The notes under the pieces: generated by a model
What the model was told of the DNA's origin: nothing
Databases searched by the model: none
Seen by the model: the letters and a program-made list of their open reading frames with translations, nothing else
Shown here: one piece after another, positions 25,201-46,722 of the stretch
Layout of the letters: the number at the start of each line of letters is the position of its first letter
How positions within the stretch are numbered: position 1 is the stretch's first letter
Made by a program: the position numbers and the translations under genes
Source of the DNA: Phaeosaccion multiseriatum
Lineage: Eukaryota > Protista > Ochrophyta, other classes
DNA: 64,000 nt
NCBI GenBank assembly: GCA_965112735.1
Contig: OZ218958.1
Location: forward strand, 744,001-808,000
Reading direction: 5' to 3'

Positions 25201-28200
25201 ACGGCGTGTACAGAGACATTAAGGACTTCGCTGCGGAGGTGCGCCTCACATTCGACAACGCCATGGCATACAACCCAGACGATGGAGAGGTGAGTGCCAG
25301 TGTCATGGAAGGGTACATAGGGGTACGTAAAGGTTATACATGCACATGGAAACTATTTCCTTAGAAACGGGTTACCATCATGTATTAACCTTCTCCTCTC
25401 CTTCTCTGCTCTGCTCTGCATCTATGTACGTACGTACGAACGCACACACACACACGCGTACAATCGCACAAAAGGTGTACCCGGTAGCCCAGCAGATGAA
25501 GCAGCAGTTCGAGATCGACTGGGCGCAACTCCTGCAAAACATCGACGCGGACGAGGAGAAGCGCAAGAAGGACGGAGAGTCCTGCATCCTGTGCGGCTTT
25601 GGACAACTCAACTTTGAGCCCATGACTTACTACTGCAACGGACCCAACTGCAACGGGCAGCGCATCCGTCGCAAAAGTCACTATTACACAGACAGCAGCA
25701 ACAAGTATCACTGGTGTCAGCAGTGCCATGGAGATCTCAAGGACGGACAGGTGGGTGGGTTTGGGTATATGGGTTTTTGGGGTGGGGTAGGGTGTGGGTG
25801 GGGTGGAGTGGGTGGGGTAATGCGGGGGTGGGGCAAAGCATGCCCTGTGGTGTGTGTGACTCAACTCCACGTGAACCCACTGCCCAGGGGCTACTTCTGA
25901 AACTGTATCCGCACACACACTCACGCACACACCCTCACCCTCTCTCTCTCTCTCCCCACACGCCAGCCCATCGCGCTGTGCGAGGTGACTCTGCAGAAGA
26001 AGGACTTGAGCAGACGAAAGAACGACGAGACGCACGAGGAGCCCTGGGTGGAGTGCGACCAGTGCAAGCAGTGGGTGCATCAGATCTGCGCCCTCTTCAA
26101 CACCAGACAGGTGTGTGGTGTGTGGTGTGTGGTGTGTGGTGTATCACCAACTTGTGGTGCTGGACTGTATCGCTGCTGTGCGGGCATATATCCGTATGAC
26201 CGACTGCTGTGCTTTACGCTCGCACCTGCTTACTGACTGGAGCTTTAGCATGACCTGACGTGTTTTTGTTGCGGTCAGGATAGGCTTCCATTCCATGGCG
26301 TTATGTGTGTATGTACCCCGACGTGTTTTTCGCCGTTCGCGCCTTCAGTAGCGGGGTGATTGTCAAAATCGGGGCAGAGAAAATACAAAGCCCGCCGGGT
26401 AACCGCCTGGCAGGGTAGGGCTTGGTTCATGTCTGACAAGCGGGATTGTCGCCCCTCCTCGTGGGGGGTGACAACGTATCCATGCCTGTCCTATTCGAAG
26501 CGCAAATTCTTGTTTCTTTTGTTCTTTCTGTCAAAAGGCTTTTTGTGTCCGACCATTTGCCATGTGTTAGGAAAGAAGCCCTGATCCTCGTCTCCCTTCT
26601 TCCTCTCTCCCTCCGTCCATCCGCTGCCATCCCTCCCTCCCCCCTATATACCCCAACCTCGACCCCTATATACCCCAACCCCACCTACTACAGAACACGC
26701 ACGACCAAGCCGCGTACACATGCCCCAAGTGCATCCTGCACAACCGCCGTGTGTCGGGCAACCTCAACCCCACGGCCCACAAGCTCTGTGCCAAGGACTT
26801 GCCGCACACGCCCTTCTCTAAATACCTCGAGGACAGGGTGCAAAAGATGCTGCAGGCGGAGTATGTAAAGCAAGCCAAGAGGGATGGCGTGCCCATAGCA
26901 CAAGTGGAGAAGGCGGGCACGCTGTACATTAAGCAGGTGCGTGTGGATGCGTGTGGATGGGTGTGGATGCGTGTGTGTGTGTGTGTGTGTGTGTTTGTTT
27001 GAGTATACTCTCTCTGTCCTGACACCCCTCTCTCTGTCTTGTCCTGACACCCTCTCACTGTCTCTGTCCTGACACCCTCTCATTCTCTCCTGACGCCCTC
27101 TGTCCTGATACCCTCCCTCCCTCTGTCCTGACACTCAGGTGTCTAGCCTGGACGTGAAGCATGTAGTGCGGCCCAACATGTTCAAGCGTTACAAGAAGCT
27201 GTACCCCGACTTTCCCATGGAGTACCCAGCCAGGAGCAAGTGTGTGCTACTCTTCCAGGTGAGAGGGGCAGAGGGAGAGGGTGCAGGAGGGGGAGGGTGA
27301 GAGAAATGAAGGGAGGGAGGGAGAGGAGAGGGAGAGGATGTGGCAGAGGAAGAGGGAGAGGAGGTGCCGGAGGAGGTACCGCAGGAAGTTGAAGCCGAGG
27401 ACGAGCGAAGGGCTCACGCTTTCTTCGATATTAAAGGGGCCAAACTAACCAAACGCTGCTGCTGCTCTTCCTCCTCATATGTACCCGTGTCCCTGTATCC
27501 CTATATCCCATCCCAGGACTTGGACGGCGTGGACGTGCTTCTCTTCGGCATGTACGTGTACGAGTACGGCCACGCCTGCCCCGTCAACAACCACCGCCGC
27601 GTCTACATCTCGTACCTGGACTCTGTGCATTACTTCCGCCCTCGTCAGTACCGCACTGCCGTGTATCACGAGACGCTAGTGGCCTACCTGGAGTACGTGC
27701 GGCGGAGGGGCTTCCACACGGCGCATCTGTGGGCCTGTCCACCGCTCAAGGGGGATGACTACATTCTGTACTGTCATCCCGAGGATCAGAAGACTCCCAA
27801 GGACGACCGTCTGCAGCAGTGGTATGTGACCTTGTTGGAGAAGGCCAAGGAGGCAGGGGCGGTGATGACAATTGGCAATCTCTATGACGACTACTGGAAG
27901 GACGACAATGACGCCTCTAGCCTGCCCTACTTTGAGGGTGATTATTGGGTGGGTGAGGCAGAGAACCTCATTAAGGATATTGAGGATGCCGCTTCGGACA
28001 GCAGCAAGAAGGGGGGTGACGCGGGCAAGAAGGGAGGGACTTCGAAGAACAAGACCAAGAAGAAGAACAACAACAGGGGGGGCAGGGGCGGGGGGGGGGG
28101 CAGGGACAAGCCAGGGGCGGATGGGAAGCACGGGAGCAGCGATGCGCTGATGCAGAGGCTTGGGGAGATTATTGAGCCCATGAAGACGGGCTTCCTTACG

Positions 28201-29261
28201 GCGGCGCTGCTGCCTGACAGTTTCAGAATAGAGTGTGCCGAGCGGAGGCACAAGGAGGTGGCGATCACCAAGGCGAAGGAGACGGTGGCGGAGATGCAGG
28301 GGAGGGGGCAAACGCCGGAGCCGAGCTTGGTGGCACTGGCAGACACACCTATTGCCAAGGATGAGACGGACGAGCAGGAGGAGCGGATGGAGTGCGAAGA
28401 TTTTGACACACGCCAGGCCTTCCTCAACCTGTGCCAGGGCAATCACTACCAGTTTGACCAGGTCAGACGTGCCAAGCACAGCAGCATGATGGTTCTGTAT
28501 CACTTGTGCAACCCCGACGCACCCAAGTTCCTTCCCGTGTGCTCGGGCTGCTCCAAGGAGATACACACCGGCACCAGGCATCGCTGTGAGGTACGGAGGG
28601 AGGGAGAGAGGAGATGGGGAAGGTGGGCGGGGAGGGATATGGACACAGGGAGGAGGGAAGGGAGGGAGACCCTCTGCACTCAGTTCTCCGCCTCTTCATT
28701 CCTATTCGTGTCAACATTCTGCACGTCAGTTCTAACCCCTCTTGCTCCCTCTCTCTGGTCTGCCCTCTCTCTCTCTCTCTCTTCTCCGACCTCTTCTCTC
28801 TCTGCCTCTCTCCCCCTCTTCCGAGCACAGACGTGTAACGACTTTGAGCTGTGCAGTGATTGCGTCGGCACCGTCTCGCACCCCCACCCCCTCAAGGCTC
28901 AGGCTGTGAGCAAGGCGACAGGCACGAGCCAACCGCAGATGACAGAGGCCCAACGCGCAGAGAGGAAGCGCACCATCGCTCTGCACATGAAGCTGCTCAT
29001 GCATGCCTCCACGTGTAAGAACGCCGTGTGTCCGTCTGAGAACTGCTCTCGCATGAAGAACCTTCTGCAGCACGGGGCCACCTGCCAAGTTCGCACCTCG
29101 GGAGGCTGCCATGTGTGTCGCCGCATCTGGGCGCTGCTGCAGATCCACGCTCGTCAGTGCAACAGGTGAGTGAGAGAGAGAGAGGGAGGGAGGGGAGTTG
29201 AGGGGGGCGAAAGGGTCGGCCGGACGGTCTGGAGAGGAGTGGACTGACTGTGAATCGAGTG

Positions 29262-32249: not shown

Positions 32250-32700
32250 ACTAGTTGGCTCATGGTCAAAGGTCAGCACCTGGCTTCTCGCCTCTGGCCG
32301 TTCGTCGCTGCAAAGGGGGGTGGGGGGGAGCTTCACCGGAGGCCTGAGAAACCCTGCCTGGCGCCCGCTGCTCATGTGTATCTTCCTATCATTCATCGGC
32401 GTTGATTCTTTTGTTCCGCGGTGGGGGCGGACCAAAAGGAGCAGCCCAATTGCCTGAGGAACTAGGTCGGCTGTCTGCCCATATGCTTACCGCTGCGACC
32501 ACTGTTGCTGGGGCTGCCCTTGACCCATGCAATGCCGCTGCTGCCCTTGCCCTGCCTGCTTTTGATTGAGGGGTTGGGTGGCAGGCACCTTCTCGTTCTC
32601 CGCTTGGCGACGACTTGTTGCAAAGGCTATACCACCACCCCCTGCCCCTTCTCCATCTCCTTTTCTCAGCACTGATAGCTTGCCCAATGCTTGTAACTCT

Positions 32701-33266
32701 CCTCCTCCTCCTCCTCCTCCTCCTCCTCCTCCTCCTCCTCCTCCTCCTCCTCCTCCTCCTCCTCCTCCTCCTCCTCCTCCTCCTCCTCCTCCTCCTCCTC
32801 CTCCTCCTCCTCCTCCTCCTCCTCCTCCTCCTCCTCCTCCTCCTCCTCCTCCTCCTCCTCCTCCTCCTCCTCCTCCTCCTCCTCCTCCTCCTCCTCATCC
32901 TCCTGCTCCTCCTTCTCCTCCTCCTCCTCCTCCTCCTCCTCCTCATCCTCCTCCACCACCACCACCTCCTCCTCCTCCTCCTCCTCCTCCTCCTCCTCCT
33001 CCTCCTCCTCCTCCTGCTCCTCCTCATCCTCCTCCTCCACCACCACCACCTCCTCCTCCTCCTCCTCCTCCTCCTCCTCCTCCTCATCCTCCTCCACCAC
33101 CACCACCTCCTCCTCCTCCTCCTCCTCCTCCTCCTGCTCCTCCTCATCCTCCTCCTCCACCACCACCACCTCCTCCTCCTCCTCCTCCTCCTCCTCCTCC
33201 TCCTCCTCCTCCTCCTCCTCCTCCTGCTCCTCCTCCTCCTCCTCCTCCTCCTCCTCCTCCTCCTCC
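32701..33266. repeat. (CCT/AGG)n trinucleotide tract, about 570 bp, with CAT/GCT/CCA variants
   Basis: Pure (CCT)65 at 32701-32895, followed by recurring blocks containing CCT-CAT-CCT..(CCA)4; overlaps the end of the minus-strand REC gene. Confidence 0.97.
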
Positions 33267-33745
33267 TCTCGGACAGATAGCTCCGGAGCACCTCCCTATT
33301 GGCTTTGCGCCCTCCACGTGGTAGCCCTCCAGAATACCGCGAAAGGCATTCACATCCAGAGGCTTACGCAGAACATCAAGGGCTCCTGCATCAAGGCAAA
33401 CATTATACAGGTCCTCTCCCTCGAGGCCGGATATCACCACCACGGGAACATCGGATAGAGGTGGGCCGTAGTCTCTAAGGGCTTGCATAAGCTCGATTCC
33501 GTCCATCTGAGGCATCACAATGTCCGTCAGCACAACACTGAATTTGTACTTGTCCACATTTCTGCAGAGGGGAGGGAGGGGAGGGGAGAGGGAGGGAAGG
33601 AAGGAGAGAGGGGGGGAGGGAGGGACGGAGGGAGGGAGGGGAGGGGAGGGGAGGGGAGGAAGGGAGCGAAGGCTGGATGGTGAGTGTACAGCCGATTCTA
33701 GAAACAAGCAAAGCCAAGCACAACGACACTGCCTGACATCGATGT

Positions 33746-33788
<43 letters not shown>

Positions 33789-35407
33789 AACAGCACACAC
33801 ACACGCACACATACACGCACACATACACGCACACGCACACACACACGCAAACACACATACACACTCACACACACGCACGCACACACACGCACACACACAC
33901 GCATACGCACACACGCACACACACCTCATCATGTCCAGCGCCTCTCGTCCGTTGCTCGCCGTCTCCACCGGGAACCCAAGCGCCTGGAGCTTCCTCCTCC
34001 CAATAGTGAGCGACACATTTGAGTCCTCGACCAGCAACACGTTGATCTTAGCCGCGGCAGCTGCGGCGTCTTGCTTGAGCTGGAGGTAGTGAAGGGCCAT
34101 CTGCTTTCTGCGCTTCTGGGCCCTTGACATGTGGGATGTTTTGTGCTTGCCCCTTCCTTTCTTCTTGCTCTTCTCATTTTCCTTGTCATTCTCCGTCTTC
34201 TTCTTCTTGTCGTTCTCGTCTTTTTCCACATCCTTCGCTTTGCTCTTCTCCCTCTTGTCCCCCCCCTCCCCCTCCCCCTCCCCCTCCCCCTCCCCCTCCC
34301 CCTCCTCCTCCTCCTCTCCCTGCTCCTGCTGCTTCGTCTCGACTGTGATGTCACTGCTGCTTGTATCAGTGCTCATCTCTGACGGAGTCGAAGGCAAGTC
34401 CTTGCACTCCGCCGTCATCTTCTTCTCCACCCGCTCCACAAAGCTCAGGCGGCTATTCGTCACCGCTGCTGAGGCCTTGTGAGCTGACATCACGACGTGA
34501 AGTAGACGGTCCCCTACCCGTTCAATGCTGCTCTCCTCCTCCTCCTCCTCCTCCTCCTCCTCCTCCTCCTCCTCCTCCTCCTCCTCCTCCTCCTCCTCCT
34601 CCTCCTCCTCCTCCTCTTCCTCCTCCTTCTTCTTGTTCTTCTTCTTGTTCTTCTTCTTTTTGCTCGCACCTAACTCCCCGCCTTCGGTTCCATCCTCCCT
34701 CTCCTCCTCTGGTCCGTCACTGTTGTCTTCGTCGGTGTAATTGATGCCATCCTCCTCCTCGCTATCATCATCATCCATACTACCGTTGCTATCGTCGCCA
34801 GTCGTGCCCTCGTCGTCGTCCTCCTCCTCTTCGTCGCCATCGACACCACCATCACCAACGCCTCCTTCCCTTCCATCGCCCTTGTCGTTACCACCAGCAG
34901 CAGCAGCAGCACCACCACCACCACCACCCTCGGCTAAGGCAGCAGCACGGGCAATCTCCTTGGTGAGATCAGCATGATGAGGCAGGGCGCCTTCGCTCCT
35001 CCCCTTCTTCCTCAACCTCCTGCTCCGCCGTCTCTCCGCCGCTCTTGCCTCCTTCTCTTGCCGTTTCTTGTTCTTTTCCATGCGCGCCTCTTTCCTGTGC
35101 CGAGCCATCGCATTGATGCGCTTCCGCTCCTCCTCGTCGTACTCGTGGGCGTCTTGGATGGTGTTGATTGCTTCGAGCATGTCGCCGAGCAGGTCTGAAA
35201 AGAACCGTTCCGTCGCCTCCTCTTCTTCGATCCCCGTATCCCTCGCTGTTGCTGCTGCTGTTGCTTTCGTTGCTGATGCTGCTGGAAATGATGCTAGTTT
35301 CTTCGTACTGGACTGCTGTATCCTTGACACATGCAATGGTGCTAATACTGCTCCTGATCCTGTTCGTGCTCCTGCTCCTGCTCCTCCTGCTGTTGTCGTC
35401 GTCTTCG

Positions 35408-35443
<36 letters not shown>

Positions 35444-38055
35444 TTTGCCCCTGTCCCTGATAGTATCGACACTGTGGCGAAGGGTCGTGCTCTCCTTCCT
35501 CCTCCACGAGGGTTTCCGAATCGTCGTCTCTCCAATACCAAATCACGCGCTTGCTCTCATCCAAGAGCACAAGACCCATGTTGGAAACCATCGTAACCCC
35601 CTCGGGACTCCCCGGGGGGATTCCCGATCCCTGGGAGCGCGGCGCCGCTGCTGCTGCTGCTGCTGCCGCCGTCGTCGGAGAGAGTGGCAGCTGCTCTGCT
35701 GCAGCTGGCGCCTCTTGGGGTGAAGCTACTTGCGAGTATGGCGAGACAGAGGATGATGATGGCCATGATGGTTGAGCTGGTTGCCCGGCGGCGCGCTGTT
35801 GCTGCTGCATCACCAACTGCTGCTGAGCCGACGGAGAACGTGTGGGGCCATCGATGTGTGAGAACCCCGGGGGGGAGGGGAGGGATGTAAGATGAACACA
35901 AACACGCAACAAAAAACACACATTCACCCACTCTAGACGTACCTCGCTTCTCTCCTCCTTCGCCCCCTCCTTCGTCTGTTCCTTGCTCGCCTCTCCCTCT
36001 TGTCCCTCTTCCTCGTCCTCCCCCTCGTCCTCCTCTTCCTCCTCCCTCGGTGGTGCTCGAAGATGTCCTCCGACATACATGAGTGACGTCACCAGCTTGT
36101 CACTATCGCTGAGAAGCCCGTACTTGAGACTCAGGCGGCGTTGAATGGTCTCCAGCACGTGGGGCGGATGTGCTCCCACCGCCAGGACCTTCGTGTCATA
36201 GGCATCGAGGGCGAGGACCCTGAGAGTGGGTGGATGGATGGGTGGGTTGGTGGGGTGGGTAGATAGGCAGGCAGGTAGATACGTAGGTAGGTATGCAGGT
36301 AGATACGTATGTATGTATGTAGGTAGATAGGTAGATAGGTAGGTAGGTAGGTAGGTAGGTAGGTAGGTAGGTATCCAGGTAGATACGTATGTAGGTAGGT
36401 AGGTAGGTAGATAGGAAGGAAGGAAGGAAGGAAGGAAGGAAGGAAGGAAGGAAGGAAGGTAGGTATGGAGGTAGGTACGTACGAATATGTGGTGCGGGCA
36501 AAGTCGAAGTCAGGTGGAATGGGTGCAAGGGTCGGCGAATGTGTTGGAGTGTTTCGGGAGCACTCCCTCCACACGTGCCATTGAGGGCAACCGAAACTCA
36601 CGTGCGATTGAGGGCAACCAAGAGCTTCTGTGTGTGATAGTCGAGAGCAATTTTTGTGTCAAGCAGCACGTCAATCACTGTGTCCGCATCATCATCGCCA
36701 CCCTGCTGTTGTTTTTGTTGACTTCTTCCTCCTTGCCCGCCGTCCGTGTGCTCCCCTCCGACTCCTTGCTTGCCGTTCCCCGATGGTCCTCGGTGATGCT
36801 CTGCTGCTGCTGCTGGTGGTGGTGAGGCGCTGGAAGGCAAAAGGGAGGGGGGTAGGCATGTGAAGAACGCCAGCAGGAGCTGAGGAAGGAAGGAAGGGAG
36901 GGAGGGAAGGAGGGAGGGAGAGAGGGGAGGGAGGGAGGGTCTTTAGCCAATCATTAAAGAAGGGATATTGGACAAGAAACCAAAAGACCAGAAAAGATAC
37001 ATAGATAGAGAGAGAGGTGAGGGGACGGAGAAGAGCGAGAGGCAGGGAGGGACATCCGATAATCAGGGAAGGGAGAGACGTTGGGGGGGGGGTGAGGCAA
37101 GTAAGGACTCATAGACAACCATCCCCTTGTCCTCTACGCGCAGCCCCAGCAGGGGGGCCTACAGCGATGGCAGTTCGTGGTCAGAAGGGCAAGGACGGGA
37201 CCGTTGGACCTTTCACGACGGACCACAGGGAGCGAGTTGAGAGGAGAAGCGACAGCCTCCTCCCCCCTGCCGGAGTCTCTCTCTCTGCCTCTGTCCATAT
37301 GCCTCCACCCATATACCCCTACCTCAGTCTCTGCCTCTGACTCTGCCTCTCTCTGTATCTCTGCGTATGTCAGCCTGGAATCCCCCCCCCCCCCCGCTCC
37401 TCGAATCCGCTCCTCCCCCCCTCCTTCTACCTCTATCTCTACTCTCCGTTCTCACCTTCTCGCCGTTGGGATGCTGATGCAGGACAAAATCGTTCCCTCT
37501 CTCATCTTTCAGAGAGAAATCCCTCGCTGGCTGACCAAGTTTAACCTTCACCTCCGACGGCCGAGGAATCATCGACCTCCTCCTGGCGGCAGGCAGAGCC
37601 GTATTCTTATTCTTGCTTACAACGCCGATGTGAGACTCTGGCTCTCCAGATGAACCCCGTATCGGAAACGCAAGAGGCTGTCGCCCAACACTAGAGGCTT
37701 GCCCCGGAGCTTGCTTGACGATGACGGAAGCTCCTCGCGGCTTCTCAGTGAGCTTCACGACATCCTCAGTCCTGTGCTCATGGAAGGTTGCGGCCTTTAC
37801 GAGCTTGCGCTGCCTCATCTTTAACCCACCGCCGCTGGTCGTATTAACATTGGGTGGTGGTGCACCCAGGAACCGAAAAGTCCCCTGGGGGGCTACTTCT
37901 GCGCCGCCCCCGGGGCCATCCGCACACACGGCCCCGGGGTAGGGTGAGGAGAGCTGCCCGTCGCCCTCTTCTCCAACTACGCTACTGGCAAGCACTACAC
38001 GAATCGGGGAGAGTGGTTCTAGCGTCGCAAGTGCCTCCTCCTCCTCCCCCTTCTC

Positions 38056-38106
<51 letters not shown>

Positions 38107-39349
38107 GTGGTGGTGGTGGTGGTGCCGCTGCTTCTCCTTCTGTTTCTTGCTCTTCTTGTTGTCCTCCTTCGTCTTGTTCTTCTCCTCCTCTTCCTCCACA
38201 ACCACCTGGGGCCTCCGACAGTGTCGCTTGAGCGCTTGAAGCACCTCTTCCTTTCGCATGGGCTTATGCAGCACATCGAGAGCTCCCTGAAGGACGATCA
38301 ATAGAGAAAGGCTTCAGCACACACACGCAAGACACACACAGGCATAAACACGCACACACACACGCACGCATACACACACATCGACTCACCATTGCTAAGC
38401 ACTTCTCCGCCGCCCCTGTTTCGTCTACCCCACTCAGCATGATGACGGGAATCTTCCGCAAGCAAGGGTTCTCTTTGATAACGGTCAGCACCTCCAAGCC
38501 GTCCATCTCAGGCATGATGATGTCCAGCAAGATGATGTCCACCTGAGGGACCCATCCAGCGCCACCACTTGACCTCGCGATGGACATTGCACTGGACGCC
38601 AGGCTCGTAGGAGCTTTTGGAGAGAGGCCTTGCTCCGATTGCCGCTCACCAGTCTCCGCGACAGCGACAGACCTGTTGCGACCAAGGCGACGAAGGAGGG
38701 CAATCCCTTTTTCGCCGCTCGATGCTGTCTCCACAAGAAAGTCTTTCCCGAGAATACGAGTGGCAAGTTTGCACGCTACTATCGAGTCATCGATTATAAG
38801 AAGCCTCGTCTTGGAAGGATCGGCCCACTCTTCGTATTCCGAGCCCCACTTCCACTCTCCCTGGTCTGCCGCTAGCGGGCTGTCCCCCGCTTCCCCCGAA
38901 GCTAAGGAGGACCCCGACGACGACGACGACGACGAGGAGGAGGAGGAGGCGGAGGAAGAGGACGAGGAGGGTCGGCGAGGGAAAGAGTCGTCCGCCTCCG
39001 TACCTATCGTACTGGTGCTCCATGACTGAGCCCTCCTTTTCGTCGAATCCCGCTTCAGTATGAAAGGCTGATTTCGTGGGGACGCGTTGATCTCCCCGTT
39101 TTCTTCTTCTTCTTCTTCTTCTTCTTCTTCTTCTTCTTCTTCTTCCCCATCCTTGCCCTCGTCGACCTCCTCCTTGCCCCCTTCTCTCGTGTCTTCCCTC
39201 GTTATCTGACTTATCGTCCTCCCTCTCTTCCTACTCCCCTCCCTGCCACTGGTTCGATAATACGAGGGCGCAGCGGGGATTCGAAGAGGCATACTAACAC
39301 CTTCACGACCCGTGCGGCCTACAAACATTGTCTTGGCCGTTGCCGCCAT
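33144..39349 (-). CDS. Dual-receiver response-regulator protein with a central degenerate AhpC/TSA (peroxiredoxin-like) domain
   Basis: Exons 39349-38390, 38286-37456, 36879-36602, 36219-35943, about 35822-33925, 33561-33144. REC1: [30 protein letters not shown]..|[12 protein letters not shown]2: NVLLVEDS..|..[30 protein letters not shown]. Middle: [23 protein letters not shown]|LLLAFFTC..|..[41 protein letters not shown]. Confidence 0.85.
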
Positions 39350-40218: not shown

Positions 40219-43200
40219 ATGTCAATGCAACCCAAGCAGTGGGTGACCGAGCCCCATGAGCTCCTGGAGCCCAAGATCGGCACTGGGGAGGTCGCCGGTA
40301 GGACGCCCACGACTGTCATGGCGGTGTTCAAGGCGACGGTGGAGAAGTTTGGGGACAGGAAGGCTCTTAGCTACAAGGTGAGAGAGAGACAGAGAGAGGG
40401 AGGGTCAAGAGGAGGAAGAAGAAGAAGAACAATAAGAGGGAAGAAGCACGGAATGTGTACTGACGCCATACCTGCTGACTGGAAGAAGCTTTCTCTGACT
40501 TCTCCTATCCCCACACAGCTCGCTCACCCACGGAGCTGCTGTGCTTGCTTCCTAACGTCGACCCCAAGCCCCTTACTCTGGACTCTTTTCCTTTCTTCGC
40601 GTTGCCCTCACTCACCTACTCACTCACTAACGCATCTCCCCTTCCTTCTGCAACCATCTGTCTCTGTTTGTTCATCTACCCGCTGCGGTGCCACTGCCGG
40701 GCCACTGCCGTGTCAGATCCCGAAGGAGGATGGGTCGGTGGTGGGGGTGGAGTGGACACACTTGACCTGGAAGGAGTACTACGCTCAGGTGTGTGTGTGA
40801 GAGAGAGAGAGAGAGGGAGAGGGGCGGGGGAGGGAGGGAGGGAGAGAGGGAGGCCAAGTAGGGTGGGAGGGACACAAGACAGAGCTATTCGCCCATAGAG
40901 ACCTGACAATGGGTGGGTGTACACAGTACAGAGTGCACGCCAGTCCTTGCGGGGATGGGAGTGGGACACGTGTCAATGGATGGATGCCTGTACCGTGCCT
41001 ACCTCCTCTCTCAATCCACAACTTCGCTTTACCTATTTCTTCTCGTCGCCAACCGTATAACTAACCAACCAACCAACCAACCACCCAAACCCCCGTCGCT
41101 CCCAGTCTCTGGCCTTTGCTAAGTCGCTCGTGAAGGGCGGTTTCGCGCCTCACCGCTGCACCAACATCCTGGGCTTCAACTCCAAAGAGTGGTTCATTGC
41201 TAACATGGGCACCATCGCGGCAGGGGGCATCGCGGCAGGCATCTACGCCACCAACCTCTCCGAGGTACGATCCATGAGCGATACATAACCATACATAAAC
41301 ATACGTAGCGTAGCAGAGAGGGGGAGGTGTATCGGCAGACATCTACTACGTCAACAACCTCTCCGGGACACGTTACGTTATGTAACCTTAAATAACCACT
41401 CCGTGTATATGCGTGTGTGTGTTGCCCGTTGTCCCTCTCTCTCTCATCTCTCTTGCTCTCTTTCCCCTGCCCCCTTCCCTCTCCCCTGAACCCCTCCCTC
41501 TCCTGCCCCCTCCCTCTCCTGCCCCCTCCCTCTCCCCTGCCCCCCTCCCTCTCCTGCCCCCTCCCTCTCCCCTGCCCCCCTCCCTCCCCCCCTCCCTCCT
41601 CTCCCTCCCTCCCTCCCTCCCTCCCCTCCCTCCCCTCCCTCCCGTCCCTCCCCTCCCTTCCTCTCCCTCCCTCCCTCCCCTCCCCTCCCTCCCTCTCTCC
41701 CTCCCTCCCTCCCTCCCTCCCCCCCTCCCTCCCCTCCCTCCCTCCCCTCCCTCCCTCCCTCCCTCCCTCCCTCCCCTCCCTCCCTCCCTCCCCTCCCTCT
41801 CTCCCTCCCTCCCAGGCGTGCAAGTACATCTCGGATCACTCCGAGGCCGAGGTGGTCATTCTGGAGGGGCAGGCGCAGCTTGACAAGTACAAGGGCATCG
41901 CTAAGGACCTCAAGAACCTCAAGGTGTGGCATGTGTACTCCAACCAAAGAGTCGTTGTCATGTGTGATGCCATGTGCTTTTTCCCCGGTTGGGGCCAGGA
42001 TTTGTTGTTGTGAAATTGAGCTCAACCTCTTGACATTCTTCTTGGGGTGTTTCTCCCCTTCCCTCAATCCCTCCCTGCCTCCCTCCCTCCCCTTCCCAGT
42101 CGATCGTGGTGTACAACATCGCCTCCATCCCCTCTGACCTGGACATTGGCGTCCCTGTCTACACCTTCGATGGCTTCCTCAAACTTGGGGCAGAGGTGGA
42201 CGACGCCACCATGGAGACACGCATCTCAGACCAGAAGCCCGGCCACTGCTGCTCCCTCATCTACACCTCCGGCACCACAGGCCCACCCAAAGCCGTCATG
42301 ATCAGGTGCGTTGATCAGTCTGTGTGTGTATGTGTGTATGGGTGTGTATGGGTGTGTGTACGTGTGGGTTTGTGTGTGTGCGTGTGGGTGTGTGTATACG
42401 TGTGTGGGTGGGTGTTTGCGGGTATGTTCGTGTGGGTGGGTGGGTGGGTGGGTGGGAGTGTGTGTGGGGTGGGTAGGTGGGTGTGGGTGGGTAGGTGGGT
42501 GTGGGTGGGTAGGTGGGTGTGGGTAGGTGGGTGTGGGTGGGTAGGTGGGTGTGGGGTGGGTAGGTGGGTGTGGGTGGGTAGGTGGGTGTGGGTGGGTAGG
42601 TGGGTGTGGGTGGGTAGGTGGGTGTGGGTGGGTAGGTGGGTGTGGGTGGGCAGGTGGGTGTGGGTGGGTAGGTGGGTGTGGGTGGGTAGGTGGGTGTGGG
42701 TGGGTAGGTGGGTGTGGGTGGGTAGGTGGGTGTGGGTGTGTGTGTGGGGGGAGGGGTCTGGGGGTTGGGGGCGGGGTGCGTGCTCTGTGTGTCTTGTCTG
42801 TCTCTCCGTCTCTCCCTCTCCCTCTCCCTCTCTCTTCTCTCACACACACTCTCTCTCTTAATCTCCACCCATTGGCTGCTCTCCCTCTCTTCCTCCCTCC
42901 CTCCCTCCCTCTGTGAACTATACAGCCAGGACAACATTACATGGACAGCAAACACGCTGCTGAGCATGTACCCCTTCGACCACACCGAGAGGGTCATCTC
43001 CTACCTCCCCCTCAGGTAGTTGCAGTGGGGTAGGGTAGGGTAGAGGTAAACCCTCTGTCCTGACACCCCTCTCCATCTGCTCTGACACCCTCTCTCTCTC
43101 TGTCTCTGACATACCTGTCCTGATAACCTCCCTCCCTCCCTCTCTCTCTCCCTCTCTCCCTCTCTCGCCCATCTCCCTCCACCCCCACGGGCCCCTCCAT

Positions 43201-43293
43201 ACGCCCATATGCACCTCCAGCCACATTGCGGCCCAGGTTCTGGACATGCACGGTCCTATGTTCATCGGCGGACAGGTAAAGCATTCTCTCCCT

Positions 43294-43328
<35 letters not shown>

Positions 43329-45529
43329 TGGCTCTCCCTCTCTTTCCCCCTGTCTCTCCCTCTCTGTACCTCTCTCTCCCCCTCCCCCCTCTTCTCTCTT
43401 CTCTCACTCCCTCTTTCGCTCTGCCCGCCTTCCCTGCCTCTCTCTTATTACCCTCTCTCTCGCTCCTCTCCTTCTCCCTCCCCCTCTCTCTCTTTCACAC
43501 ACAAACACTGTCTCTCTCTTTCACACGCACACACTCTCTCCCTCTGTATCTCTTTTATACACACACACTCTCTATTTCATACACACACTCTCTCTTTCAT
43601 ACACACACACACTCTCTCTCTCTTTCTCGCTCTCTCTCTCTTTCTCTCTCTCTCTTTCTCTCTCTCTCGCTCTCTAAGGTGTTCTTCGCACAGCCCGATG
43701 CCCTGCGCGGCTCTCTGGGGGCAACTTTGAAGGATGTGAAGCCCACCATCTTCTTCGGAGTGCCCCGAGTGTGGGAGAAGATCTACGACAAGATGCAGGT
43801 GGGTGGTATGTCAATGGGTGCGTGGGTGCGTGGAGTGGGTGGGTGGTGGGGTCCTTCCTTCCCCTCCCTACCCCAACATAGTGCTCACCCTGTCCCTCTC
43901 TCTCTGTTTGTCTGTTTTTCTATCTGCCTGTCTGTCTGCCTGTCTGTCTGTCTGTCTGTCTTGTCTCTTACCTCCCTGCCTCCCTCCCTCCCTACCTCCT
44001 TACCTGATGTCAGGATGTGTCCCGCTCCACCAAGGGAGTAAAGAAGAAGATTGCGACATGGGCCAAGCGCAAGGGCTCAGAGAAGAGTGCCCTTCACCAG
44101 TACGGAGGGGGGGATGGGGCGCCCTGCGGTTACGGCATCGCCAGCGGCCTTGTCTTCAGCAAGATCAAGGTACAGCAGTTGGTGGTATGGGCAGAAGGGT
44201 AGGGGTGGGGTTGAGGTAGGATGGGGAAGGAGGAGACACAGGGAGAGACAGGGTGAAGGGGGCGAGCCGGCCTGCTTGGTCCGCATGTCTATCCTGCCTG
44301 TCGAACGTACCTGTCCGTCTGTTCGGGCGTGGGTGCGATTGTGTGTGCTTCACTCCGTGCCACGCCACTCTCTGACGTGTCTTTTGTCATTTTTGTCCTC
44401 TCTCTCCCTCCCTCCCTCCCCCTCTTCCTCCCTCCATCCATCCCTCTCTCCCTCCCTCCCTCTCTCCCTCCCTGAATCACCAACACCAACACATAGGCTG
44501 TGTTGGGCCTAAACGAGACCAAGGCGTGCTTCACCGCCGCTGCCCCCATCAGCGTGGAGGTGCTCAAGTACTTTGCCTCCATTGACATTCCCATCTACGA
44601 GGTTAGTGTGTGTGTGTGTCTCCCTCGTTTTCTCCCCCTCTTTCGCTCTCTCTCCCTCTCTCTGTATATAGGCTGTATATCTGTTTTCTCTCTCCCACTC
44701 TCTCCATCTCTCGTCTCTCACTCCGTTGCATTGACATTCCCATCATGAGGTTCATCGGTCTGTCTTTTTCTTTTTTTCTCTCTCTCGTTCCTCTCCCTTA
44801 CTCTCCCCCTCTCTTCCCTCTCTTCCTTCTCCCTGCCCACCCAAAGGTGTTCGGCCAGTCCGAATGCACTGGCCCCCAAACCGCCAACACCATCGACGCG
44901 TGGAAAATCGGAACGTGTGGAAGGCCCATGATCGGCACTGAGAGCATGATTGTGCCTGAGAACGGAGAGCTTTGCTACAGGTACAGGGGCGTGCAGCTGT
45001 ACAGACACCCTTACTTACCCTTACTTACCCTTACTCCCCTCCTCTTCGCCGCATTTGTCATTGTCTTTTGTCTTTGTGGGCGGCTGCCTCTGTGTACACG
45101 GTAACTGCACACTGCTAACTGCTAACCAGCTGCCAATGCCAACAACAATTGCAACTCAAACTGATTACAGGGGCCGCCACATCTTTATGGGGTACATGCA
45201 CGACCCCGATAAGACGAAGGAAACCATCGATGGGAAGGGATGGATGCACTCAGGGGATGTTGTCAAGTTTGACGACGACGGCATCGACGGCATGGTGAGC
45301 CATACGTGGAGAGGGAGTGATGAGCGAGTAGTTAGTGATGAGGAAGGAAGTGGGGGAGGGGGGGGGGGGGCAGAGGGAGGGAGCGTCGAGGGTATGGTCA
45401 GTCATCAGAGGAGGTGTGGGGGGGCTGGGCAATAGGAGCGATGTACACATGTAGAGAGAGAGAGAGAGGACCTTAAAGCAGTTCCAAACACGTTCCCTCC
45501 CTCCCTCCCTCCTCCTCCTCCTCCTCCTC

Positions 45530-45561
<32 letters not shown>

Positions 45562-46722
45562 TTTCCTCGCCTCTGTCAGGTTGGGCCCAGCGGATTCATG
45601 AGCATCACAGGACGCATCAAGGAGCTGATCATCACCGCAGGAGGAGAGAACATCCCGCCGGGTAAGTTAGGCAGTTGGCGATACACTACAACAGTTGTTA
45701 TTCCCCCCTCTCTGTCCACCCTCGTTCCTCTCTACTCTCTGCTCCTCTCCTCCCTCTACCGCTCATCGTATCTCTCCCATCTCTCTCTCTGTGTGTGTGT
45801 GTGCGTGCGTGCGTGTCCATGCAGTGCTGATCGAGGACCAGTTCAAGAAGGCCATGCCCGCCATCTCCAATGCGATGGTCATCGGAGACCAAAGGAAGTT
45901 CCTCTCCATTCTTCTCACCCTCAAGGTCAGTGAGAGAGGAAGAGAGGGGAGGAGGAAGGGAGTAAGCGCATGGTCTAAGGACGCATAAGCACGTACAGAA
46001 AACACACCCGCACACGTACATGCACACTTTTGCCCGCATACACACACTCATACTTCACACACACCCATAATCGCCCTCCTCCTCCTCCTCCTCCTCCTCC
46101 TCGTCCCCCTCCTCCTCCTCCTCGACTGGCGACGGTGGGAGCAGGTGGAGATGGATGAAGAAGGTTCTCCGACCGACAAGCTCACTGGCGACGCTCTGAC
46201 CACGAGCAAAGAGATAGGCAGTGTCGCCACAACGGTCAAAGAGGCGATGGAAGATCCGCTGTGGACCACTTACCTTGACAATGGCATGAAGGCCGCCAAC
46301 AAGGCCACCACCAGCAGGGCTCAAGAGGTGAGGGAGTTGGTGATCTAGAGGGAGGGAGGGAGGGAGGGAGGGAGGGAGGGAGGGAGGGGGAAGCGAGAGC
46401 GGAGAGTACGAGACAAGAGAACGAGAAGAGAGACATGGATGATGGCGAATGGAGGGGGCGATGCGGAGGGAGTAAGTACCCCATCAGCCACACTCACTAA
46501 CACCCATCACACACCGGCCCACCCATTCTCCCTCGTCATTGTTGGACATATATATAACCGTGTCGTCAGGTGAAGAAGTGGGCTCTGCTGACTGACGACT
46601 TCTGCGAGAGAGGCGGGGAGCTGACGCCGACCTTGAAACTGAAGCGGGGCCCCACCGCTGCCAAACACAGCACTGTGATTGAGGGAATGTACGCTCCAGC
46701 CCTGCCGGCAAGCAGCACGTAG
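40219..46722 (+). CDS. ACSBG: Long-chain fatty acyl-CoA ligase, bubblegum (ACSBG) type
   Basis: NILGFNSKEWFIANMGTIAAGGIAAGIYATN; AMP-binding CCSLIYTSGTTGPPKAVMI; ISYLPLSHIAAQ; PTIFFGVPRVWEKI; FGQSECTGP; GRHIFMGY; WMHSGD; ITGRIKELIITAGGENIPP|VLIED; GELTPTLKLKR; stop TAG 46720-46722. Confidence 0.93.
42470..42736. repeat. 18-bp G-rich intronic minisatellite (GGGTGGGTAGGTGGGTGT)n
   Basis: About 14 tandem copies inside an ACSBG intron, with dense GGG runs on the sense strand. Confidence 0.9.

Follow-up and report, generated by a model that had tools for sequence, protein, structure and literature searches.

Can a peroxiredoxin fold that has been stripped of its catalytic residues serve as the core of a response regulator? 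The question is raised by a locus at 39349-33144 on the minus strand of a 64,000-nt stretch of DNA from Phaeosaccion multiseriatum (contig OZ218958.1, positions 744,001-808,000, assembly GCA_965112735.1), which is called the window below and to which all nucleotide positions refer unless stated otherwise. An initial annotation, made from the DNA letters, had read from this locus two receiver domains flanking a pseudo-peroxiredoxin of the BCP/PrxQ type. The present analysis suggests that the locus is probably one multi-exon gene for a soluble protein of the response-regulator type, in which receiver 1 is followed by a degenerate BCP/PrxQ-type domain and, after a long low-complexity linker, by receiver 2. 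The predicted three-domain order was shown to be conserved in other marine eukaryotes, including at least one raphidophyte, and the protein appears to represent a real, conserved response-regulator architecture with a pseudoenzyme core that is apparently undescribed. Two-component signaling in photosynthetic stramenopiles, i.e., brown algae, raphidophytes, and probably others, is barely characterized: a catalogue of the histidine kinases exists (PMC6324907), but none of the partners that act downstream of them. The only non-receiver domain of the architecture is a peroxiredoxin fold without its catalytic residues, which makes it a clear case of a pseudoenzyme and a candidate physical link between phosphorelay and redox signaling in algae.

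Homology of the middle region to peroxiredoxins

The window protein was defined as the translation of a spliced six-exon, minus-strand model (39349-33144), whose coding sequence of 4662 nt yields 1553 amino acids and a single terminal stop, as judged from the open reading frame (ORF) track and the raw sequence. The peptide strings quoted in the initial annotation were all found in this translation, and the five introns all have GT..AG borders and compatible phases. The fragments of the middle region are recognized weakly when they are searched one by one. The 53-residue head of exon D, compared with 24,736 Pfam models, had AhpC-TSA as its sole match (E 0.052, 13.9 bits), which covers positions 56-97 of the 124 in the profile, the place where that part of the fold belongs. 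The best PDB sequence match of the exon-B tail, the N-terminus of the uncharacterized protein 3u5r, was not significant (E 0.65), a phmmer search of the PDB with exon D returned only a polyubiquitin repeat artefact, and an ESM Atlas search with the 53-residue piece of exon D was uninformative. Such weak single matches, along with the artefact, are what would be quoted in favor of the view that the resemblance to peroxiredoxins is a chance match of short motifs picked by eye. When the low-complexity inserts were removed, E. coli Bcp gave one collinear blastp alignment with the remaining core over 121 columns (23 bits; pairwise E 0.001); because insert removal is a hypothesis-guided choice, tests that are independent of it were run.

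For these tests a BCP profile was made from 8 diverse bacterial BCPs, that of E. coli and those encoded by 7 plasmid-borne genes, the latter being used because a scan of genome contigs with E. coli Bcp yielded near-identical enterobacterial genes only and hence no diverse profile. Against the full spliced protein with its inserts kept, the profile reached an E-value of 4.3e-4 with two collinear matches, at residues 567-603 and 694-735, which bears out the collinearity with BCP/PrxQ that had been proposed, and in a comparison of 66 inter-receiver linkers the 1033-residue linker of the window protein ranked second (E 7e-5). A profile of three relatives, which are described below, was then compared with 1850 stop-to-stop fragments from both strands of the window, and the fragment spanning exons D and E came out on top (E 0.0014). 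In an extended form the same profile gave the window region 26.0 bits, whereas none of 2000 shuffles exceeded 5.3 bits, and the domains of the three-relative profile fall on residues 566-603, 678-740, and 862-885 of the window protein. Alignment of the family with the BCPs by hhalign gave a probability of 97.8% and an E-value of 7.6e-13; with or without the window sequence the value is about 1e-12. These comparisons show that the predicted middle domain is homologous to peroxiredoxins. A chance match is exceedingly unlikely and is already contradicted, because the tests that do not depend on insert removal are significant and collinear, and because relatives with the same flanking receivers pass the gathering score of AhpC-TSA and have a predicted BCP/PrxQ fold.

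The likeness to BCP/PrxQ peroxiredoxins such as E. coli Bcp and Sulfolobus Bcp4 (3hjp) extends to the order of the predicted secondary structure elements, i.e., a β1-β2 hairpin, β3, α2, β4, α3, β5, α4, β6-β7, and probably α5, and to the motifs G-x-x-A-P-x-F-x-L, LLSD, and hhhhD..g.h..W. In contrast, BCP/PrxQ proteins stand alone, whereas the window domain is situated between two receivers and is broken by long low-complexity loops.

Receiver domains

Both flanking domains score above the gathering threshold of Pfam Response_reg (PF00072, 30.2 bits): receiver 1 with 47.4 bits (E 2.4e-12) from exon A alone, and receiver 2 with 63.1 bits (E 3.3e-17) from exons E and F. In an alignment with E. coli CheY, positions 12, 13, 57, 87, and 109 are occupied by D, D, D, S, and K in receiver 1 and by E, D, D, S, and K in receiver 2. 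Receiver 1 thus has the Asp pair of β1, the phospho-acceptor Asp in LLDIIMP, the Ser in MLSG, and the K-P pair in GALDVLHKP, and receiver 2 has the corresponding Asp, Ser, and K-P in LTDIVMP, VISG, and LRKP. The acidic pair, phospho-Asp, Ser, and KP listed in the initial annotation are therefore found in both receivers in the CheY alignment, and both receivers look phosphorylatable. The residues of the phospho-site (D12/D13, D57, T87, and K109) are also kept in all six receivers of the relatives. Receiver 1 contains a 46-residue insert rich in Ser, Ala, and Gly in its α2-β3 loop (38560-38700, minus strand), which is absent from all relatives and could be either a real loop or an unrecognized in-frame intron.

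No HisKA/HATPase_c, HPt, or DNA-binding domain was found by Pfam in any of the four large ORFs of the locus, which gave only Response_reg and low-complexity noise, in agreement with the initial annotation; the relatives P0007 and P0147 likewise have no kinase, HPt, or DNA-binding domain according to Pfam. Two receivers in one chain are also present in PleD (REC-REC-GGDEF), and the best partial NCBIfam match of P0007 and P0147 is the PleD family model, via their receivers only and far below the cut-off. In PleD the second receiver has degenerated to an adaptor. The window protein differs from PleD in that both of its receivers keep the phospho-site residues, another domain lies between them, and neither GGDEF nor any other known output domain is present.

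Related proteins with the same domain order

An exhaustive HMMER search with receiver 1 collected 150 receiver proteins, none closer than 49% identity. These were searched with the core of the window domain and then with a small profile, which led to three proteins with a matching inter-receiver region, P0007 (621 residues), P0055 (629 residues), and P0147 (771 residues); these designations, like P0018, P0043, P0009, P0024, and P0056 below, are working labels of the proteins found. Other routes were less productive. Word-indexed protein searches with the 1011-residue ORF of the locus, which were swamped by low-complexity words, and with receiver 2 gave no orthologue of 556-1769 residues, and those with the P0007 domain returned P0007 itself only. 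A scan of metagenomes with the family alignment, for which generic patterns were selected, yielded ordinary bacterial peroxiredoxins only.

In P0007, Pfam recognizes two Response_reg domains together with AhpC-TSA (E 9.8e-12) and Redoxin (E 8e-7); the AhpC-TSA match extends over profile positions 2-122 of 124 and, with 45.3 bits, exceeds the gathering score of 26. P0147 matches AhpC-TSA (E 1.6e-4) and Redoxin (E 3.9e-4), while AhpC-TSA is the sole Pfam match of the P0055 domain alone (E 0.057). Transcript contigs from MMETSP/JGI carry P0007 as a complete ORF, P0147 is found on several transcript-like JGI and Logan contigs of ~2.5 kb, and a Logan contig of 4.6 kb carries P0055 as an ORF with no interruption; because the ORFs are unbroken on such contigs, the three domains form one protein there. 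The GC content of the three coding sequences is 40-47%. The P0147 and P0055 domains are 44% identical to each other, and receiver identities across the proteins range from 31 to 46%. Each receiver of the window protein is nearest to its counterpart in P0007, with 45% identity for receiver 1 and 46% for receiver 2 (47% in a tblastn alignment of P0007 with the window locus), and this pairing of first with first and second with second receivers argues that the three-domain order is ancestral.

The fold of the P0007 domain was modeled with AlphaFold2. For residues 290-465, a 9-row alignment gave a model with a mean pLDDT of 71.8 and a pTM of 0.73, in which the strands and helices follow the order of peroxiredoxins. 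Its top Foldseek matches in the PDB are exclusively peroxiredoxins, with E-values from 8e-12 for Sulfolobus Bcp4 (3hjp) to 1e-8, and they include PrxQ from Aeropyrum and Sulfolobus as well as AhpE and BcpB from M. tuberculosis. An ESM Atlas feature search with the P0007 domain pointed to AhpC/TSA and Redoxin clusters, a result that is taken as a lead only.

A close relative of P0007 is annotated in the raphidophyte Heterosigma akashiwo as a partial protein of 367 residues (P0009, CAM9946608.1). When P0007 was compared by tblastn with the corresponding locus (L104:2461-4430, contig CAXMZW020001945.1 of GCA_964200215.2), two segments were recovered, one with the Met-Gly N-terminal motif and receiver 1 and the other with the C-terminal half of the peroxiredoxin-like domain and receiver 2 (E 6e-92), and the N-terminal half of that domain is apparently encoded between 3373 and 3600 of L104 in other frames. 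The annotated P0009 has thus lost its peroxiredoxin-like domain through mis-modeling, and it exemplifies how current gene models miss the domain. The order REC, AhpC-TSA, REC, for which the initial annotation had suggested a search, occurs in P0007, P0147, P0055, and the H. akashiwo locus, and hence in four or more organisms besides this alga.

P0007, P0055, P0147, P0056, and the H. akashiwo locus share a Met-Gly start, which resembles an N-myristoylation signal, followed by a conserved helix of ~30 residues (F..h...Y..hK..G). This start and the helix suggest that these relatives may associate with membranes.

The nearest named relatives of the window receivers are brown-algal proteins, P0024 from Ectocarpus sp. 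12 (CAN0155565.1) and P0056 from Nemacystus decipiens (g5119.t1), in keeping with a window that comes from a brown alga or a near relative of one. They too have two phosphorylatable-looking receivers joined by a repeat-rich linker, here rich in Gly, Ala, and Pro; P0056 starts with Met-Gly and has the N-terminal helix motif, and receiver 2 of P0024 is 50% identical to receiver 2 of the window protein. However, neither the family nor the BCP profile found a match in the P0056 linker, and neither protein matched the BCP profile over its full length. P0024 and P0056 are therefore regarded as paralogues of the window gene, not orthologues, and either the domain was lost in the paralogue lineage or the gene models skip it.

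Two further, more divergent proteins, P0018 (L102:1501-3801) and P0043 (L103:1501-3762), from assemblies GCA_024449855.1 and GCA_024449835.1, consist of a receiver, ~180 residues, and a second receiver. Their middle region was not recognized by sequence methods. A low-confidence AlphaFold2 model (pLDDT 59, pTM 0.60) shows a thioredoxin-like order of elements; its structural matches, at ~4e-6, are ResA, Sco, GPx, and peroxiredoxins. A conserved Cys occurs in LLLP-G-R-C directly ahead of a long helix. As a lead only, P0018 and P0043 may point to a wider family.

Loss of the catalytic residues

The peroxidatic motif PxxxTxxC was found in none of the family members in alignments with the eight BCPs, including those made by hhalign. 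Unlike BCP/PrxQ, the window domain therefore has no peroxidatic Cys or Thr in register: F-F-T-C follows strand β3 immediately and is itself followed by the 65-residue low-complexity insert. In P0007, Ala and Ser stand in the Thr and Cys columns of the motif, and in P0147 and P0055 a Cys is found three residues ahead of the peroxidatic column (PTIFC and PTIYC, respectively). The catalytic Arg that precedes β6 in peroxiredoxins is replaced by Asn in the window protein (SNMG), P0007 (ANLG), and P0055 (PNLG). The loss of both PxxxTxxC and the Arg, which had been noticed by manual alignment, is thus seen in these alignments too, and on these grounds the pseudo-peroxiredoxin reading holds. The same cannot be said of the Cys in FFTC, whose conservation was to be checked: the Cys of P0147 and P0055 is ~2 residues away from it in the alignment and P0007 has none, so that it is not a conserved feature of the family.

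The Cys residues bear on another reading, in which the middle domain is an active enzyme that works via the FFTC Cys as an atypical 1-Cys peroxidase or thiol oxidoreductase and is switched by phosphorylation of the receivers. A Cys is indeed present in the loop after β3, near the usual active site, in the window protein, P0147, P0055, P0018, and P0043, and P0147 has an Arg at the catalytic position. We nevertheless regard an active enzyme as highly improbable, because PxxxTxxC, with its Thr, is absent from all members, Asn replaces the Arg in three of the proteins, as described above, the P0007 loop lacks Cys altogether, the Cys positions of the others do not fall in one alignment column, and the window Cys is directly followed by 65 residues of low-complexity sequence.

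Gene model

Exon A (38390..39349; this and all other features of the gene are on the minus strand) begins with the ATG at 39349 and encodes a low-complexity N-terminal region and, from ~38809, receiver 1, as supported by the ORF, Pfam, the CheY alignment, and tblastn with P0007 and P0055. Intron 1 (38287..38389, GT..AG) interrupts receiver 1 ahead of GALDVLHKP, and the joined product restores the K-P motif of receiver β5. Exon B (37456..38286) completes receiver 1 (38286 to ~38221) and continues through a linker rich in His, Gln, Glu, and Lys to the initial strands of the peroxiredoxin-like domain (37551-37456), where the motif G-x-x-A-x-D-F-x-L-x-D is found. Intron 2 (36880..37455, GT..AG) leaves the profile alignments unbroken: the matches of both the BCP profile (residues 567-603) and the family profile (566-603) run without a gap over the boundary of exons B and C at residues 597/598, so that homology supports the junction 37456/36879. 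The joining also restores strand LLLAFF, which is aligned with VMLVFF of P0007. Exon C (36602..36879) accordingly carries strand β3 (LLLAFF), the Thr-Cys pair, the low-complexity insert of ~65 residues, and a 13-residue segment assigned to helix α2. Intron 3 (36220..36601, GT..AG) is in phase 2 and is rich in tetranucleotide repeats; the family-profile domain at residues 678-740 crosses the boundary of exons C and D (residues 689/690) ungapped, which supports both the junction 36602/36219 and the inclusion of exon C.

Exon D (35943..36219) encodes β4-α3-β5-α4 of the peroxiredoxin-like domain (36219 to ~36063, with the motif GLLSDSD), as supported by Pfam, tblastn with P0007, and the profiles, and then enters an acidic insert. 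Intron 4 (35823..35942) is putative. It has GT..AG borders, is 120 nt long, in frame, and free of stops, and was proposed from the sequence alone; its junction (35943/35822) is situated in frame within the acidic, Gln-rich low-complexity insert, and retention of the intron would likewise keep the frame open. Contigs of the sequencing run X4 cross the introns, as expected because the run is of genomic DNA. Exon E (33925..35822) comprises a Gln/Ala/Ser-rich insert, β6-β7 (18 residues, 35585-35532) with Asn at the position of the catalytic Arg of peroxiredoxins, a possible C-terminal helix at 35219-35145 for which the family alignment is the sole basis, a low-complexity linker of ~360 residues, and the first half of receiver 2 (34049-33925). 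Intron 5 (33562..33924, GT..AG), with (GT)n and CCCT repeats, interrupts receiver 2, and its removal yields an unbroken receiver domain. Exon F (33144..33561) provides the second half of receiver 2 (33561 to ~33315), a poly-Gly tail, and the stop codon at 33146-33144. A bZIP-like basic region in the linker (~residues 1015-1055) was rejected as a domain: the bZIP invariants are missing by inspection and there is no Pfam match.

Whether these exons belong to one gene deserves consideration, because the receivers and the peroxiredoxin-like exons might instead be distributed over two or three transcripts, for example with a split within the 360-residue linker. A very long, repetitive linker separates the peroxiredoxin-like domain from receiver 2, the joined form found no RNA match in the runs searched, and P0009 of H. 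akashiwo shows how readily such loci are mis-modeled. A split is nonetheless improbable. One open frame of 1011 residues takes in exon D, the entire linker, and the first half of receiver 2, and every junction is a phase-compatible GT..AG. Moreover, a single ORF encodes the same order of domains in the transcripts of P0007 and P0147 and on the contig of P0055, and receivers 1 and 2 of the window protein match those of P0007 position by position.

Possible role in phosphorelay signaling

In eukaryotic His-Asp signaling, hybrid kinases pass phosphoryl groups to HPt proteins and these in turn to response regulators. For Ectocarpus, 13 histidine kinases are listed (PMC6324907). This route and the listed kinases would place the protein encoded by the single multi-exon gene as a terminal or intermediate response regulator, to which HPt proteins, themselves served by hybrid histidine kinases, would pass phosphoryl groups. 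The pseudo-peroxiredoxin domain would then be the sole candidate effector, a non-catalytic module that might offer a binding or dimerization surface or a surface for sensing thiols or peroxide. Phosphorylation of the flanking receivers might set the availability of this surface, or the surface might bias the phosphorylation of the receivers. The likeliest of these roles would be that of a non-catalytic binding or dimerization surface that is exposed or hidden by receiver phosphorylation, while a thiol- or peroxide-sensing role of the domain is possible but unsupported.

A more far-reaching proposal is that proteins of this architecture form an undescribed class of algal signaling integrators that is spread over several photosynthetic stramenopile lineages. 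Their silent peroxiredoxin fold would sense thiols or peroxide, or dock an active peroxiredoxin or thioredoxin, and would thereby couple redox state directly to the His-Asp phosphorelay by way of the two flanking receivers, with the Met-Gly starts placing some members at the membrane by N-myristoylation. This proposal is doubtful as it stands. Parts of a His-Asp phosphorelay are linked with peroxiredoxins in fungal oxidative-stress signaling, namely in the Mak2/3-Mpr1-Mcs4 system with Tpx1 of S. pombe and in Skn7 with Tsa1 of S. cerevisiae, and this likeness does not imply a peroxide link for the window protein. The peroxiredoxins of the fungal systems are separate, active proteins, in contrast to the non-catalytic fold fused between receivers here.

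The initial annotation had not known the architecture as a characterized system, and we also found no paper that describes it in full-text literature searches that combined response regulator or receiver with peroxiredoxin, the Pfam names, diatom, brown alga, and Ectocarpus; no NCBIfam model covers the architecture either. Automatic Pfam tags do mark P0007 with both families, so the databases can be said to "see" an architecture that is apparently undescribed.

Several observations weigh against the interpretation as a single gene for a receiver, pseudo-peroxiredoxin, receiver protein. By itself the window domain scores 13.9 bits against the AhpC-TSA (PF00578) gathering score of 26, it is only 18-27% identical to the domains of the relatives, and its thioredoxin-like peroxiredoxin fold is inferred by homology. 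Low-complexity inserts break the peroxiredoxin-like fold at several loops, and some of them may be unrecognized introns. In three RNA or metatranscriptome runs, the matches to the locus are only GAG-type repeats near 36005-36045; since the RNA runs yielded no transcript of the locus, one mRNA is an assumption. P0147 is the sole member that keeps the Arg at the catalytic position, and P0147 and P0055 have a Cys near, though not at, the peroxidatic position, so that some redox chemistry may be possible in those members. The Met-Gly start shared by the relatives and their conserved N-terminal helix are also missing from the window protein, and a search for an upstream exon with this motif gave nothing convincing, the best match (E 0.21) being 13 kb off and beyond the neighboring gene. 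Finally, whatever is said here about the function of the protein is deduced from its domains.

Some of the same features might be read as signs that the window copy is a decaying, non-functional remnant of a gene for this architecture that is filling with repeat expansions. At least four low-complexity inserts interrupt the fold, in addition to the 46-residue insert of receiver 1 and the poly-Gly tail, the conserved N-terminal motif is missing, and identity to the relatives is low. Decay is very unlikely, however, because the reading frame stays open for 1553 codons and the splice sites are clean, the receivers keep all phospho-site residues and the peroxiredoxin fold its core motifs of strands and helices, and the brown-algal paralogues P0024 and P0056 have repeat-rich linkers as well.

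Repeats and neighboring genes

A near-perfect GGA/GAG triplet repeat of ~700 bp (32600-33300) extends over the 3' end of the receiver gene, where it gives rise to the poly-Gly tail, and it is this repeat that drew unrelated metatranscriptome reads. Downstream of the gene, triplet repeats are followed by a putative gene for an acetyltransferase of the p300/CBP type. In its 609-residue ORF (27340-29169, plus strand), motifs recognized by eye resemble those of the p300/CBP acetyltransferase core, ZZ finger, and TAZ2 finger, and an intron is apparently read through in the middle of the ORF. The upstream neighbor is a divergent, multi-exon gene resembling long-chain acyl-CoA synthetases (40219-46000, plus strand), in which AMP-binding-type motifs were recognized by eye and whose introns are full of GGTGGG- and CCCT-type repeats; with its start at 40219, the start codons of the two genes are ~870 bp apart, which is the room left for the 5' end of the receiver gene.

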